A stretch of DNA of 64,000 bases from Phaeosaccion multiseriatum (GCA_965112735.1 OZ218953.1:992001-1056000), one strand, 5' to 3'; shown: positions 154-63,666, counted from the first letter of the stretch. The notes: a model not told the origin generated them from the letters alone. Made by a program: numbers and translations.

Positions 154-3100
154 GTGTGCTGCACACTGCATCAAGCTCTCGCCATCACTCCCCGCGAGCG
201 CTTCGATGAAAGCTCCAAGCGAGTCTACGCCACTCTCGCCTACGTCATTACAAGGCAAGGCATCTCTCTGCGAGAGGTCCAGGCAGCAAGGAGGGCAGTC
301 TTGGGAGAGGCGGCGAGAGCGGTGGGGCAGAGTCAGATCACAGCGGGCGACGACGATGTGGAGGAGCAACTCGCAACGTTGCGTCTCTGGCGGCAGATCC
401 CCGCCTTTCACTGCCATCCTTCTGCGCCGGATGGCAGTGGAAGTGCACGTGGTGCTGATGGTGATGAGGATTGTGCGTTGCTGCAGGCCTTGGCCATGAC
501 CGGGGGAAGTAGAGCAGTTGGTGCTGCGGCAGGAGGGGCAGGAGGCCAAGCCAAGGGGGAGGAGGAGGAGGAGGAGGAGGAGGAGGAGAATGGCAATGGT
601 CATCATGTGGACGAAGTGGACATGGTTCTCACACTTGGCGGCATGGCGAGCTCCAACCCTCTTGAAGCTTGGGCTACACTCACCAGCAGCGAGCACCAGT
701 GGCGCCATGCTCCTTCCTTCCCTCGGTGGGTGTGTAGCGTTGCAAGGGCCGCCCTTGTGCATGAGGAAGTGGATTCAGAGGAGGTGTTACGTTGGCTGAA
801 TTGGGTACCCGCGAGGTCAGTGGAAGGGGCCCAAGAAGGAGTAGCAGGAGCAGGAGGAGGAGGAGAGGGTGGAGGGGGGGGTGAGACGTCTGCACATGCT
901 GTGGTGCTATACCAGGTGTCGAGCTTAGGACCTTTGGTGTGCTTCGTGTTGCAGCGACAGGGGGCGCTGGGGGGCGGGGGGAGAGGGGGAGAGAAGGGGG
1001 GAGGGGTGGAGGGACTGTCCTATCTTCGACTTCCCTCCTCGAAGCAAGAGAATGGAGCCGGGGGTGGCGACACAGATGGCGACACAGATGAGGAGGAAGG
1101 GGAGGGAGAGGGGGAGGGAGGAGGGGATGGCAATGGACCAGGGTTGCCAGCCTTGTGGCCTTCTCCCGGGGGGGGCATATCTCCCGGGGGGGAGGAGACG
1201 GAACAGCTGCTGTGCTTAGCGGAGGTGGAGCTGATCATTGCCACAGCCAAGACCAGAAAGGCGCTCGCTCTGGCATCACAGATGGCGGAGGCGAGCAAGG
1301 CGAGGAAGGCGCAGCAGTTGGTGATACAACAACAACAGCAACATCAGCAGCAGCGGCAGCGGCAGCAGTCTGGTGCTGCCAACATATGGAGGCCTTGTGG
1401 CTTCACGGGACCCCACGCTGATCTTACAACGGTACTGGACGAGGCGGGAGAGGCGTATCAGGAGGAGGAGGCGGAGAACGATTTTGATGACTTGGACGAA
1501 GAGGCCTATCTACAGACCATAGACGACACTGGCTTGGACTGGCCAAGGCCTCTTACTGTAACACAAGAGGAGGAGGAGGAGAAGGAGGAGGAGGAGGAGG
1601 AGGAGGAGGAAGAAGAAGAGGAAGGAGGGGGAGAGGAAAGCGAGGGGAGGGAGGGCGGGCAGAACGGCCAACGAGAAGGAGAAGTAACCGAGCTGTGCCG
1701 GCTTGTGGAGGACTCATTCCAACACTTGGCTTGGGCGGCGGACCGGGCCAAGGCGGCAGGAGCATGGAGGATGGCACTGGATGCGTGTGGGGCGCTGTGG
1801 AATCTTGTAACGGCTCTGTGGCTCTCTCCGCAGCACTTTGGCGACCACGGTAAGGGAGCGGAGAACCAACGCATCAACCACGTATCAAGAGCGTCCGCCT
1901 TCGACTCCTCCTCTTCCTCCGGAGGGGGAGGGGGAGGGGGAGGGGGAGGGGAGGGGGAGGAGGACGGGGAAGGGACGGGTCCTTTCCGAGCCGGCGTGTT
2001 TTCAGCCGAGCATATTCGAGTGTATATGAAGGCTGCGGAGGCTCTGCTTGACACTGTGGAGGGGATGCAGAGGGGGCCAGAACAGATGCAGCAGTTGGTG
2101 ATACAGCAGCAGCAACAGGACCATACACTCAGCGCCAGCAGCCTGGGGGTGGTGTTCAGCAACACCGGCGGGGCAGGGGAGGGCCGGAGAGCGTCCGGTG
2201 GAGGAGGGGGAGGAGGAGGGGGGGGTGGAGGAACCGCTGATACAGGGGTAGACATGGACTGGGTACACCGTTTCGTGCTTTGGGGCTGCCAAGGCCTGGC
2301 TTGCTGTAGTCAATGGGGGATGCTGGTGCGCATGTGCGACAGGTTGGCGACTGTGAGCAGAGCAAGTGGCGGAATTGGTGGTACGGGGGCGGAGTACCCA
2401 GGCCACGTGGCTTACCCCTTGGCGGTGTTTGCGCAAAGCCGAAGGTGCGGGGCGGCCGCCAAGCTCCTGCGCAGTCGACAAACCGCCCTCAGTCAAATGG
2501 ACAGGGATTTCCACGCAGCAGAGGCCAAGAAGAGGTGGGTAGTGGACGAGAGTTCGCCAGTGGGTAGTAAGTCAATGGGTGGGAGGTGGAGTAGGTGGAG
2601 TAGGTGAGGTGAGTGTTGTCAAGTCCGACTCGAGTGGAATTTGAGTGTGGGCGTGTGCGTGCGTGTGCGTGTGTGTGTGGGTGTGTGGGTACGTGTGTGA
2701 GTGTGTATCTGTGTGTGCGTGTGTGTGAGTGTGTGAGTGTGTGTGTGAGTGTGTGTGTGCGTGTGTGTGTGTATGTGTGTGTGCGCGTGCGTGTGTGTGT
2801 ACATGTGTGTGCGTACGTGCGTGTCTGTGGATGTGTGGATGCGTGTGTGTGCGGATATGTGCGTGTATGTATGCGTATGTGTTGTGTCTGTGGATGTGTG
2901 GATGCGTGTGTGTGCGGATATGTGCGTGTATGTATGCGTATGTGTTGTGTCTGTGGATGTGTGGATGCGTGTGTGTGCGGATATGTGCGTGTATGTATGC
3001 GTATGTGTTGTGTCTGTGGATGTGTGGATGCGCGACCCCCGGTGACAAGCGACCTCTTCACACCAAGACTGAAAAGGCCTCCCCCCTCCCCTCCCCTCCC

Positions 3101-61306: not shown

Positions 61307-63666
61307 ACACGCACACAGGCGGCGTGCTCGTGCGCGCGTCGAGTCAATGTGCTAGTAGCTACCGCAGTCATCGCTCAGATGAGGCCGACGAACGTGGAGG
61401 GGGGGGGGATGGGAGCGGGGGGGGGGTTGGGGTGGGACCTCTCAGCAGGAGCGCAGGCAGCGGGCCGGCAGGGGGGTTCCTGAGGATGAGGGGGAGGAGG
61501 GCTCTGAGCAGGGGTAGTAGTGGTGAGGATACTGACACTGACCGGGAAGGGGAGGGAGAGGGAGAGGGAGAGAGAGAGAGAGAGCTAGAAGCTTCTACGG
61601 GCCGTAACATTCCTCGCAGCAGCCGCCGCAACCGCCGCCGCAGCAACAGCCAGGTTCAGAGTCAGGGGGGGGGGGCTTGCCTCAGCTTTGTGTCTCCCTC
61701 GGCAGGGGCTGACTGGTCATTAGTGCCAAGGGTGAGTGAGTCGAAGGTGACAGAATAAATCCACAAATCTGCTGCCAAGGTCAGCAGATGTAGTCCATCA
61801 GTAGGACCTCCTCCCACTCCTCCTCCTCCTCCTCCTCCTCCTCCTCCTCCTCCTCCTCCTCCTCCTCCTCCTCCTCCTCCTCCTCCTCCTCCTCCTCCTC
61901 CTTCTCCTCCTTTTTTTTTACTCATTCTCCCTTCCCTCCTCCTCCTCCTCCTCCTCCTCCTCTTCCTCCACCTCCTCCTCCTCCTCCCCCTCCTCCTCCC
62001 TCTCCCCCTCCTCCTCCCTCTCCCCCTCCACAGTCTCCAGAAATACGTCGTAAGAGTCCAGAAATGAGGAGGAAAGGCAGCGGAGGCGCAGCAGCAGCAC
62101 TTGGTGATACAGCAACAGGAGTTGGTGATACAGCAACAGGAGTTGGCAAGGGCATAACGGCAGTAGGAGGTATCGCAGGACAGCAGAGTCAGCTGAGCCG
62201 GGGGTTGTGGAAAGGAGGCGCACCAGTTGGTAATACAGGAGGAGGAGGAGGAGGAGGAGGAGGAGGAGGAGGAGGAGGAGGGGAAGGAGGAGGAGGAGGA
62301 GGAGGAGGAGGAGGAGGAGGAGGAGGAGGAGGGGAAGGAGGAGGAGGAGGAGGAGGAGGAGGGGACTTGATGCTGATGGATGAACAGCAGCTGCAGCAAG
62401 GCCGGCAGCAGCAGCTCTACCATCTCCAGATGCAGCAGCTCAAGCAGCAGCAGCAGCAGCAGTTGGCAGTACAGCAACAGCAGCAGCAACAGGAGCTGCT
62501 GTACTCTGTGAACCCCTTCAAGAGGCAAGACGAGGAGCATGTGCTAATGATGCGGACTCATAACCGCCGGAGGTGGAGCCACGTGTTCCCTCGTGGGGCG
62601 GTGGAGCAGCGACAGATGCCTGGTCCTAGCTGGAAGGTGAGGGAGGGAGGGAGGGAGGGAGGGAGGGAGGGAGGGGGGGGAGGGGAGGGAGGGAGGGAGG
62701 GAGGGAGGGACGGAGGGAGGGAGGGAGACTTTTTTGGCTGCTTTGCTTGCTGGTTACTGTGTGTAGAGAGCCAGAGACAGACAGAGACAGACAGGGACAC
62801 ACAGGGACAGACAGAGACAGACAGGGACAGACAGGGCGAGCACGCACATGAGCACCTACCCTCACGCGCACACCCTGACCCTGACCCTGACCCTGACCCT
62901 GACCCATACGCACACCCACACCCCCACCCCCACACACGCACACCCACACCCTGACCCTGCCCCATACGCACCAGTCCCTCTGCCAGCCTGCCCTCCTCCC
63001 GCTCACGACGGACTACCTGCCCCCCCGGGAGGAGCTGGAGCGCAACTACACAGACTCGTTCTACACCCTTACGCTACCCGACACCAGGTATGTACTCACT
63101 TGGCTGACACCAGGCGCTGGCTGATTGGCTGACTGACTGATTATTTGTCTGTCTGTCTGTCTGTCTGCCTGACTGACTGACTGACTGACTGAGTAATTGA
63201 CTGACTGCCTGACTGACTGCCTGACTGACTGCCCGACTTAACGGCCTTACTGACTGCCCATTACCTGACACCAGGCACTACAAGAGCGACCTTGCCCTGC
63301 TGGAGGAGCTCGTTTGCCAGAGGATGGCGCAAGACTTTCAGGTGGGTGGGTTATGTCAATGGATAGGTGGGTAGTAAGTCACTGGGTCGGGAGTAAGTCA
63401 ATGGGTGGGTGGGTGGGTGGGTGGGTGGGTGGGCTGGAGGAAGCCTGTTAAACTCTTGCTATCCCCCCCCCCCCACCCCTCAGCTCGTGGAGGGGGACGT
63501 GGTCAGCAGCGGTAAACTCCTAACCTCCAGCCTGGCCGGGACGGAGCATCTCCACCACCGGGGAGGAAGAGGAGGGACAGGGGGTGGTAAGAAGCTGAGC
63601 AAGCTTAGGGTGGGGGTTTCTGCACACAGAGCCGAGTACAGCTTGGGCTATAACAGGGCGAGTAAG
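47039..63666 (+). CDS. DEPDC5: GATOR1 subunit DEPDC5/IML1, many exons, continues past the window end
   Basis: [11 protein letters not shown]; [13 protein letters not shown]; [34 protein letters not shown]; [13 protein letters not shown]; [65 protein letters not shown]; [14 protein letters not shown]; [18 protein letters not shown]; [14 protein letters not shown]. Confidence 0.92.
48668..48872. repeat. 15-bp minisatellite (ATGGCAGCGGATGGG)n, ~13 copies, intronic
   Basis: Direct observation. Confidence 0.9.
50241..50373. repeat. 33-bp minisatellite, 4 copies, intronic
   Basis: Unit TTTGTGCTACTCTTCTGAACCATCTCCTCAGCT. Confidence 0.9.
52330..53270. repeat. (CCCTA)n pentanucleotide satellite, ~940 bp, in a DEPDC5 intron
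   Basis: Direct observation; variants CTCTA and CCCTG. Confidence 0.95.
53670..53855. repeat. 26-bp pyrimidine-rich minisatellite, ~7 copies, intronic
   Basis: Unit TCTCGCTCATCTCACTCTTTCTCCTC. Confidence 0.85.
56290..56515. repeat. Compound minisatellite built on GGGATGGCAGTGAATGTA, intronic
   Basis: Units end in either CAAA or GACCTTAATTGAA. Confidence 0.85.
58731..59106. repeat. 58-bp AT-richer minisatellite, ~6.5 copies, intronic
   Basis: Unit TTGTACTGCTAAGCCTTGTTGTTGAGTAAGCGTGTGTTACTATTCATGCTACCATTCG at 58731, 58789, 58847, 58905 and onward. Confidence 0.9.
60105..61316. repeat. Degenerate (CA)n array with a 456-bp higher-order duplication, intronic
   Basis: Identical translated segments at 60389-60574 and 60845-61030. 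Confidence 0.9.

Follow-up and report, generated by a model that had tools for sequence, protein, structure and literature searches.

The 64-kb window (the whole stretch of DNA analyzed here) contains CFAP54 coding sequence, an IML1/DEPDC5 intron, and non-coding, repeat-rich DNA, and one short DNA word recurs in all of them. Based on a comparison of its copies in the window, we designated the unit as a 14–15 nt word, (C)AG-TTGGTGATAC-AG, i.e. (C)AG-TTGGTG(A/G)TAC-AG, whose core (GTTGGTGATAC) is found in approximately 21 copies on both strands. The word occurs approximately once per 3 kb; in this microsatellite-rich eukaryote, it falls within exons and introns as well as in spacer DNA, and it is almost always surrounded by repeats of the CAG type. 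The exact 15-mer was observed six times in the 64-kb window, whereas 0.00 copies are expected from dinucleotide-preserving shuffles; a sequence-only reading had claimed that the 15-mer is improbable by chance, and these counts bear it out. With up to two mismatches, the same comparison gave 17 observed copies against 0.11 expected, and the 14-mer with up to one mismatch was observed 16 times in the window, as compared with 0.05 for scrambled versions of the 14-mer. Window copies with zero, one, two, and three mismatches stand at 8:8:4:~3, a spectrum that points to a young or homogenised word family. The word was met in the searchable literature only as chance primer matches, consistent with the earlier statement that no description of it was known, and neither a published motif nor any mobile element or class of repeats known to date explains it.

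All previously listed coordinates were reproduced, both for the perfect copies (2092, 6171, 8598, 9086, and 54922 on the plus strand and 57320 on the minus strand) and for the one-mismatch copies (1315, 62098, 62119, and 62224 on the plus strand; 23231, 25810, 56095, 57350, and 58327 on the minus strand). Beyond that list, we found a copy with a perfect 11-mer core at 4960 (minus strand) and degenerate copies at 22800, 50053, and 62460 (plus strand) and at 33736 and 51601 (minus strand). Positions 4053–4063 were rejected as a copy, being a chance look-alike within conserved coding sequence.

An 843-aa CFAP54 ORF includes the one-mismatch copy at 1315–1329 (plus strand), which has a 3′ CAA and is followed by a CAA/CAG run, and the perfect copy at 2092–2106 (plus strand), which is flanked by a CAG run. 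Both are read as QLVIQ, as is the perfect copy at 6171–6185 (plus strand), located between (CAG)3 and (CAG)4. The perfect copies at 8598–8612 and 9086–9100 (plus strand), whose exonic status is backed only by their ORF and by a weak codon score, share one uninterrupted ORF; the former is read as AVGDT, in the poly-Ala phase, and the latter as QLVIQ. A further perfect copy at 54922–54936 (plus strand) also encodes QLVIQ; its frame stays open for approximately 50 nt further, up to a GTGAGG donor. The reading frames assigned earlier to these six copies are thus confirmed. The copy at 4960–4974 (minus strand; core, 4962–4972) is antisense-oriented in a CFAP54 exon, so that the copies of this gene are read as QLVIQ, as VGDT, and once, antisense, as VSPT. 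It was called exonic from a colinear orthologue alignment, in which it falls in a gap of 17–23 residues between conserved CFAP54 blocks, that is, in a low-complexity linker missing in the orthologues. Because the relatives are only 25–30% identical over the alignment of this exon (36–41% over conserved stretches), exact empty sites cannot be read at 4960. The remaining exonic copies sit between or beyond the orthologue-aligned blocks. In these alignments, the exonic copies avoid conserved blocks, and those in the CFAP54 coding sequence all occupy lineage-specific low-complexity linkers. The word is found in either orientation, within introns and spacer DNA, and, in one gene alone, in two sense frames plus an antisense one; its conservation is thus at the DNA level, as the sequence-only reading had argued.

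Several other copies are degenerate or carry variant bases. The copy at 22800–22813 (plus strand) has two mismatches to the 14-mer. A G-variant copy (GGTGGTAC) lies at 23231–23245 (minus strand), where the upstream GTACAG recurs 15 nt later as a partial second unit, and another lies inside a (GGCAG)n tract at 25810–25824 (minus strand). At 33736–33746 (minus strand), the core with one mismatch (again the G variant) continues a CTG/TTG run, and its membership is ambiguous. The IML1/DEPDC5 intron includes a degenerate G-variant copy at 50053–50066 (plus strand), 8 nt past the donor AAG/GTAAGGG, and the intron after that one includes a degenerate reverse copy at 51601–51614 (minus strand), in its C-rich 3′ part and flanked by plus-strand CTG runs. 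Three head-to-tail 15-nt G-variant units, linked by TAG, occupy 56065–56109 (minus strand); the three-unit tandem proposed earlier was recovered at 56067–56108 with a period of 15, 2.8 copies, and 100% matches. A pair of copies spaced 30 nt apart is located at 57320–57364 (minus strand) in non-coding, repeat-rich DNA; the copy at 57320 is perfect, and that at 57350 has TAG as its 5′ triplet. The copy at 58327–58341 (minus strand) has a 3′ CGG, and the upstream ATACGG recurs 15 nt later with the same variant. On the plus strand, a period-21 tandem of 2.8 units (62089–62146) contains the copies at 62098 and 62119, a one-mismatch copy (GGTAATAC) at 62224–62238 is followed by (GAG)n, and a copy with three mismatches lies within a long CAG/CAA tract at 62460–62474.

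The word is amplified locally in tandem, with periods of 15 and 21, and its variants are heritable, forming an A/G subfamily and a regional TAG-linked form. The same A-to-G change is present at 5–6 independent loci, and the TAG-linked form is confined to 56–57.4 kb of the window. Variant bases are common to both partial units at 23231 and at 58327. The A/G variants cluster along the window with marginal significance (runs test, P = 0.03–0.08).

The flanks are CAG-like in nearly all copies in the window, and a flank logo displays NAG periodicity on both sides of the word, equally strong upstream and downstream. At 8–9 of 18 loci (~45%), the word adjoins a CAG/CAA tract of at least three units with which it shares orientation and phase, although tracts of this kind make up 861 of the 128,000 strand positions (0.7%). 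The orientation of the copies tracks the local G > C skew at 14–15 of the 18 loci. The in-phase placement inside CAG tracts, which breaks their purity, resembles that of the stabilizing interruptions of trinucleotide repeats (CAA/CAT in poly-Q CAG tracts and AGG in CGG tracts). However, those interruptions are single triplets formed by point mutation locus by locus, whereas here one 9-mer recurs at approximately 18 unrelated loci, and its derivation from (CAG)3 would take seven substitutions. Interruption by locus-specific point mutation was rejected on these grounds. The non-CAG variants of the flanks are TAG, GAG, CAC, and CGG on the left and CAA, CGG, CAC, and CAT on the right. The flanks are otherwise CAG-like, and a variant on one side is never accompanied by a matching change on the other, so that nothing points to the duplication of an arbitrary target. 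A duplicated CAG is indistinguishable from a CAG that forms part of the unit, since both flanks are CAG-like. The data lend no positive support to the idea of a TSD or footprint.

The word has sharp ends. Copy pairs share no more flank than random CAG–CAG sites in the window, and no pair of window copies shares sequence beyond the repeat-type flank. Within the window, neither a longer parent element containing the word nor an enrichment of half-sites beyond the full word was found. The left end, CAGTTGG, matches the reverse complement of the right end, CTGTATC, at 3 of 7–8 positions, and the DNA folds of six loci were no better, or weakly better, than those of shuffles, without a hairpin. A DNA transposon or MITE with terminal inverted repeats was rejected on this basis, and the transposon or excision footprint proposed in the sequence-only reading finds no support in the form given there, because the ends are not inverted copies, half-sites are not enriched, and no longer element is shared. 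REP/REPIN elements, which are mobilized by RAYTs, are likewise very short non-coding units copied as units in hundreds to thousands of copies. They are, however, intergenic palindromic hairpins of 20–35 nt, whereas the present word is also exonic and is linked to no transposase. REP/REPIN was rejected since the folds of the six loci gave no imperfect palindrome with a stable hairpin.

The enrichment, the discrete unit, the repeat context, the inherited variants, and the avoidance of conserved blocks count in favor of templated copying, and the best type of explanation is still a templated insertion. We tentatively favor, at somewhat less than an even chance, a self-copying DNA word that spread by templated copying among CAG-type repeats. 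Existing copies, or a few master versions, would serve as templates for the synthesis of new ones, with the DNA synthesis primed on simple repeats of the CAG type, possibly through template switching or ectopic repair of breaks in such repeats, and 9–12 new bases would be placed in phase and in the orientation of the host repeat. Slippage may then expand the copies locally, which would give arrays with periods of 15, 21, or the like. Exonic copies would survive only where they are harmless, namely in low-complexity linkers and in two sense or three antisense stop-free frames. The copies would probably arise by insertion, not substitution, with another genomic copy as the template, and a dedicated enzyme would not be needed. 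The perfect copies at 8598, 9086, and 57320 have 1–2 CAG-like triplets per side, which is too little homology for ordinary gene conversion. Furthermore, there are approximately 2,400 other CAG sites per 64 kb, to which a broken end in CAG should anneal far more often, and varied inserts would be expected from microhomology alone, not one 9-mer. Therefore, some extra specificity or drive is needed. Also counted against templated copying are the marginal clustering of the variants, the sample of a single 64-kb window, and the failure to observe any empty site, insertion polymorphism, or de novo event; no 12- or 15-nt indel is listed for the Logan contigs, although these drop rare variants.

The specificity that plain microhomology repair lacks would be supplied by a dedicated writer, a reading that we consider unlikely, which would place one fixed 12-nt cassette at CAG sites throughout the genome. 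One possibility is a reverse transcriptase that uses a short RNA as its template and extends DNA ends finishing in CAG; the template would comprise 12 templated bases and a 3-nt alignment repeat, as in telomerase templates. Another is a nuclease or integrase with site specificity for CAG sites. Such a writer is consistent with the 15-mer being 1.25 units of a 12-mer with the terminal redundancy CAG...CAG, and with the fixed length, the sharp ends, and the mere 1–2 CAG triplets needed at the target. Interstitial telomeric repeats, added by telomerase at breaks, similarly have a short fixed unit, terminal redundancy, a few-base primer match, and internal sites. However, the window contains no 12-nt periodic arrays, the periods present being 15, 21, and 30, which speaks against a writer and against telomerase-added head-to-tail arrays with the unit's own 12-nt period. 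No chromosome end falls inside the window, and nothing marks the word as the telomere repeat; unlike telomeric repeats at breaks, the word also has sites in the thousands, some of them in coding sequence. Two templates would be required to account for the recurrent A/G subfamily, and a single template acting in trans would not be expected to make variants cluster by region. Neither a candidate RNA nor a candidate enzyme was encountered, and the word has no Rfam or tRNA match. If a writer does exist, no smaller mobile or written genetic element would be known, and coding sequence would be routinely edited in frame.

Another unlikely reading is that the word is bound by a sequence-specific protein or RNA and serves as a functional cis-element. 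Selection would preserve it, or a drive would multiply it, for example through biased gene conversion wherever it is bound, as with bacterial uptake sequences or HIP1. The word contains CAGTTG and TGATA, which we take to be Myb-core-like and GATA-like, respectively, and its statistics (approximately 1 copy per 3 kb, both strands, several reading frames, and very low divergence) resemble those of uptake sequences. Neisseria DUS, Haemophilus USS, and cyanobacterial HIP1 are 9–15 nt words with roughly 1 copy per few kb on both strands, and they also lie inside genes in several frames, prefer poorly conserved parts, and show very low divergence; like them, the present word is hyper-abundant in either orientation and in several frames of coding sequence. 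In contrast to them, the present word resides in a nuclear eukaryotic genome, is embedded in and oriented with CAG-type repeats, forms tandem arrays, looks inserted and not built by substitution, and has no known uptake or methylation system. Its copies in poly-Q/poly-A linkers, introns, and repeat deserts follow no obvious positional logic, and the tight tie to CAG tracts and strand composition looks mutational. Tandem amplification at 15 and 21 nt is not expected of a selected single site, and the word was absent from the 55 kb of DNA examined from distant relatives.

Microsatellite-targeting non-LTR elements with repeat tails are known, and CAG runs come after the word in many copies. The copies might accordingly be extreme 5′-truncated 3′ ends of a retroelement with the terminus ...TTGGTGATA(CAG)n that targets CAG microsatellites, or other TE fragments or footprints. 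This is improbable, because no copy among the approximately 21 continues upstream into sequence common to others, the copies start at a constant and not a ragged 5′ boundary, and the CAG periodicity is as strong upstream as downstream instead of being confined to the 3′ side; the half-sites, ends, and folds described above argue against other TE fragments. Drosophila mini-me, the lepidopteran microsatellite families, and MITEs are also dispersed and tied to microsatellites, and ectopic exchange between repeat loci has been proposed for such families. They span tens to hundreds of bases with recognizable flanks or inverted terminal repeats, whereas the word has 14–15 nt and neither feature.

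It is likewise improbable that the word acts at the RNA level, whether by being a tiny intron, by serving as a splice signal, or by supplying acceptors, and that it spreads through splicing-related selection. GTTGGTGATACAG begins with GT and ends with AG, and the copies at 50053 and 51601 lie near a donor and in the 3′ part of an intron, respectively. However, the GT...AG span is 13 nt, and its removal would break the long CFAP54 ORFs, which are open through five copies and only as long as these are retained. In addition, the perfect core at 4960 is antisense inside a homology-supported exon, and spacer DNA contains copies on either strand. The relict spliced leaders of dinoflagellates are also short words ending in AG that are present in many genes, sometimes in tandem, but they are found at gene 5′ ends in the sense direction only, whereas the present word is internal, on both strands, and tied to CAG runs.

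We give virtually no credence to an artefact of assembly or polishing or to a sequencing adapter, in favor of which we found nothing, because the copies are in phase with host repeats, the variants are heritable, and hundreds of contigs fit CAG-motif-CAG and diverge beyond it; to our knowledge, the word matches no common adapter. Over 8598 and 9086, two single-copy loci, the short-read contigs of X1 and X2 show normal depth and not a single difference, and X5, an independent sample from another study, also has many motif-bearing contigs. At 6163–6195, around the copy at 6171, the summed depth is approximately 1000 times the baseline, and 130–150 contigs per run diverge on each side (three runs, two samples). 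Many of the contigs over this segment contain two copies of the word 33 nt apart within one tract.

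The copy counts, densities, and variant statistics presented here come from one 64-kb window, in which the exact 15-mer, CAGTTGGTGATACAG, occurs six times (five on the plus strand and one on the minus strand), against an expectation of zero from 100 dinucleotide-preserving shuffles. With up to two mismatches to the 15-mer, 17 sites were observed in the window (0.11 expected), and the 11-mer core, GTTGGTGATAC, was found at 21 sites with one mismatch or fewer. At the same tolerance the 14-mer gave 16 sites, compared with 0.05 for scrambled versions, and its background emerges only at three mismatches (26 sites versus 3). 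Every coordinate given in the sequence-only reading was reproduced, and a search for core and degenerate copies added those at 4960 (minus strand), 22800, 33736, 50053, 51601, and 62460. According to TRF, the word forms a tandem at 56067–56108, with 2.8 units of period 15 and 100% matches, and a second array, of period 21, occupies 62089–62146. The candidate at 4053–4063, GTTGGTGATAT, which is one base off the core, was rejected as a chance look-alike; it encodes DVGDI aligned with conserved residues of CFAP54 orthologues. The mismatch spectrum of the copies is 8, 8, 4, and about 3 at zero, one, two, and three mismatches, respectively, which puts them on average about 5% from the consensus. 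The family is young, is still being homogenised, or is constrained.

The invariant part of the word is AG-TTGGT-G-(A/G)-TAC-AG, preceded by C in 14 of 20 copies, and NAG periodicity extends two to three triplets deep on both flanks. Eight or nine of the 18 independent loci adjoin a CAG/CAA tract of at least three units in the same orientation; such tracts cover 861 of 128,000 strand positions. Among the remaining contexts, some copies are located within (GGCAG)n or (CAC/CAT)n, or beside (GAG)n. The strand carrying the word is the locally G-rich one at 14–15 of 18 loci. Beyond repeat-type sequence no shared flank was found in the window, where copy pairs are no more alike than random CAG-CAG sites. 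A transposon or its footprint had been proposed, together with a search for longer elements ending in the motif. Neither is borne out: the ends of the word are not inverted copies, its two halves are not enriched alone in the window, and no copy pair there extends into a longer parent element. Where the left or right triplet departs from CAG, the two sides never change together, so that a 3-bp target duplication is no more than a possibility. Single strands fold into hairpins or cruciforms no better than shuffles in most contexts, and no Rfam family or tRNA was detected within the window. The word may resemble the tRNA D-arm (CAGTTGGT) and the part of U6 snRNA immediately upstream of its ACAGAGA box (...UUGG..GAUACAG...). 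Its G variant presumably resembles Chi or the minisatellite core, and we likewise assume that it contains Myb-core-like and GATA-like half-sites.

CFAP54 is a plus-strand gene with colinear conserved blocks at 151–306, 2236–2595, 3930–5129, 6557–6925, and 7172–7645, as located by tblastn with distant CFAP54 relatives. A single ORF of 843 codons without interruption, supported at both ends by homology in the same frame, contains the copies at 1315 and 2092, which both read QLVIQ. The copy at 6171, at the end of the following ORF, is again read as QLVIQ. Those at 8598 and 9086 read AVGDT and QLVIQ, respectively, in one shared ORF, and their exon status was assigned solely from that ORF plus a weak codon score. 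A word-indexed protein search with the ORF at 8150–9346 returned no match. The copy at 4960 is antisense-oriented, with a perfect core, and reads VSPT. One alignment block, colinear with the orthologues on either side, encloses this copy, which falls in a low-complexity linker for which the orthologues have a gap of 17–23 residues. The best CFAP54 matches in an exhaustive protein search are 36–41% identical, which confirms exons but is too distant for exact empty sites. The exonic copies occupy lineage-specific linkers, not conserved blocks.

For the IML1/DEPDC5-like gene, Pfam returned IML1 only. The copy at 54922, downstream of plus-strand exons with IML1/DEPDC5 Pfam hits, is read as QLVIQ in a frame that stays open up to a GTGAGG donor. 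The copy at 50053 lies 8 nt past a donor in an intron of this gene, and that at 51601 lies, as the reverse complement, within the C-rich 3′ portion of the intron that follows. Copies at 56–58.4 kb are located in repeat-rich, apparently non-coding DNA. Direct reading of the word indicates that the only sense frame absent from ORFs is the one in which it contains TGA. Sense and antisense were assigned for CFAP54 and IML1/DEPDC5 only; at the loci in 22–34 kb and 55–63 kb, neither an Atlas look-up nor a codon-usage score settled the gene strand reliably. Because the copies span several frames (QLVIQ, AVGDT, and antisense VSPT), both strands, exons, introns, and non-coding spacer DNA, the earlier proposal that conservation acts at the DNA level is upheld.

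Five or six independent loci carry an identical A-to-G change (GGTGATAC to GGTGGTAC). The A and G forms are arranged in runs along the window, with marginal significance in a runs test (P = 0.03–0.08), and the TAG-linked form is restricted to 56.0–57.4 kb. At 23231 and 58327, the six bases preceding the word repeat its 3′ end at a spacing of 15 nt. Because these repeats share the variant of their locus (GTACAG...GTACAG and ATACGG...ATACGG), they show that the partial second units were made in place.

The fixed, sharp-ended unit, the heritable variants, and the dependence of position and orientation on repeats point to replicative copying at the DNA level. We tentatively prefer a model in which CAG-type repeats would prime templated copying, through template switching or through ectopic repair with another copy as the template, and local slippage would then multiply the copies in place. 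The main weakness of this mechanism is specificity: several perfect copies adjoin only one or two CAG triplets, and among the places where a ...CAG end could anneal, non-motif CAG sites are about a hundred times more numerous, so that an added bias is needed. It might come from interrupted tracts, which may be stable donors as pure tracts break again and again, or from a preference for retaining insertions. An independent origin of each copy from CAG runs via fold-back synthesis was rejected, because it would yield CTG-type inserts rather than one constant 9-mer.

A dedicated writer, be it a site-specific enzyme or a reverse transcriptase with an RNA template, would solve the specificity problem and also fits the 12+3 terminal redundancy. 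However, such a writer predicts 12-nt arrays, of which the window has none, and variants without regional structure, contrary to what the window contains; we consider it unlikely. A putative binding site, selected or driven, fits the abundance of the word but matches neither its repeat context nor its tandem amplification, which makes this explanation rather improbable. Truncated retroelement tails or transposon remnants are contradicted by a 5′ boundary that does not vary and by flanks that are symmetric, and we regard them as very doubtful. A role of the word at the RNA level is likewise highly improbable, given the reading frame retained through the copies and the existence of an antisense exonic copy. 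A sequencing, adapter, or assembly artefact, the pitfall named in the sequence-only reading, is practically eliminated by contigs carrying the word from two read runs of one sample (X1 and X2) and from a run of another sample and study (X5).

At the single-copy loci 8598 and 9086, the Logan contigs of X1 and X2 have normal depth and zero differences. Around the CAG-flanked copy (6163–6195), the summed depth of Logan contigs exceeds the local baseline about 1000-fold. In each run, some 130–150 contigs match this 33-nt stretch and diverge on each side, X5 included, and many of them show two copies, 33 nt apart, within one tract. The read evidence indicates that the word is a property of the whole genome. 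Its density in the window is about one copy per 3 kb; therefore, taking this density, the genome must hold thousands of copies. In a run from another organism (X6), matches are confined to microsatellites.

Among named CFAP54 relatives, the nearest comes from the brown alga Discosporangium mesarthrocarpum (GCA_964200235.2, locus L001) and is only 38% identical; the organism under study is thus without a close relative in the protein libraries and is probably a stramenopile. The loci of three relatives (L001–L003; 55 kb, 50–52% G+C) contain no copy of the word and almost no CAG tracts. Scans of metagenomic contigs with a 21-mer gave one bacterial-looking chance match only, and scans of viral contigs with the 15-mer gave single chance matches only. 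Together with the absence from the relatives' 55 kb, this indicates that the word is lineage-specific. In the searchable literature, the motif strings were found only as chance primer matches, and a concept search retrieved nothing similar.

The word is similar to bacterial uptake sequences and HIP1 in its statistics, to stabilising interruptions of trinucleotide repeats in its position, and to REP elements and telomerase-added repeats in its unit-wise copying, but none of the families that could be tested matches it in every defining feature. We file it with dispersed short repeats and repeat-borne templated insertions. For a word this short and this numerous that also occurs in coding sequence, we know of, and found, no described eukaryotic counterpart. 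To our knowledge, mobile elements described so far exceed it in length at least several-fold and have recognisable ends, and the known over-represented words of 14–15 nt are bacterial. If the word is genome-wide, this would be a eukaryotic nuclear genome in which one word of 14–15 nt has been written thousands of times, in some cases in frame into proteins. The mechanism of its spread would reveal either a new route of sequence exchange among simple repeats, with a built-in bias that lets one interruption dominate, or a new short-patch DNA-writing activity that targets CAG repeats. Either would bear on repeat instability, the origin of low-complexity protein segments, and genome-writing tools, and the word would be a ready-made marker to date and trace such events in this lineage. 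A pointer to the template, if true, would be a small RNA with CUGUAUCACCAACUG.

With 451 TRF rows in 64 kb, the genome is exceptionally rich in simple repeats. Very long pure microsatellites include (CTC)97 at 15376–15668, (GGTA)52 at 17345–17555, and (TCAC)150 at 28971–29571, and a CA-rich array of 1.2 kb at 60104–61317 is listed among them. An array of (GGGTA)n on the minus strand, about 850 bp long (52400–53250) and punctuated by AGAGCAG, lies inside or beside the DEPDC5-like gene; it looks telomere-like, yet is interstitial.

A second dispersed word family, GGATGGCAG(T/C)GG with its complement CCRCTGCCATCC, forms small arrays with periods of 10, 15, 35, and about 31 and is located at 409–439, 5634–5652, 6503–6541, 13752–13777, 13937, 38326, 48662–48870, 49474–49573, and 56346–56512. 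Its G form begins 3 nt past a donor (AAAG/GTACGGCATGGCAGCGG), its C form precedes acceptors, and an inverted pair is present at 409/429. The plus-strand introns of the IML1/DEPDC5-like gene (50046–50480 and 51357–51700) are G-rich right after the donor and C/T-rich toward the acceptor, with partly complementary words at opposite ends, such as AGTTGGTGGTTCAG, which follows the donor, and CTGAACCATCTCC, present as four units in a 33-nt minisatellite at 50241–50373. In spacer DNA at 57882–58122, two minisatellites are adjacent, one with a 21-nt unit repeated three times and the other with a 21/42-nt unit repeated six times, the latter containing CCCCGGGG palindromes.
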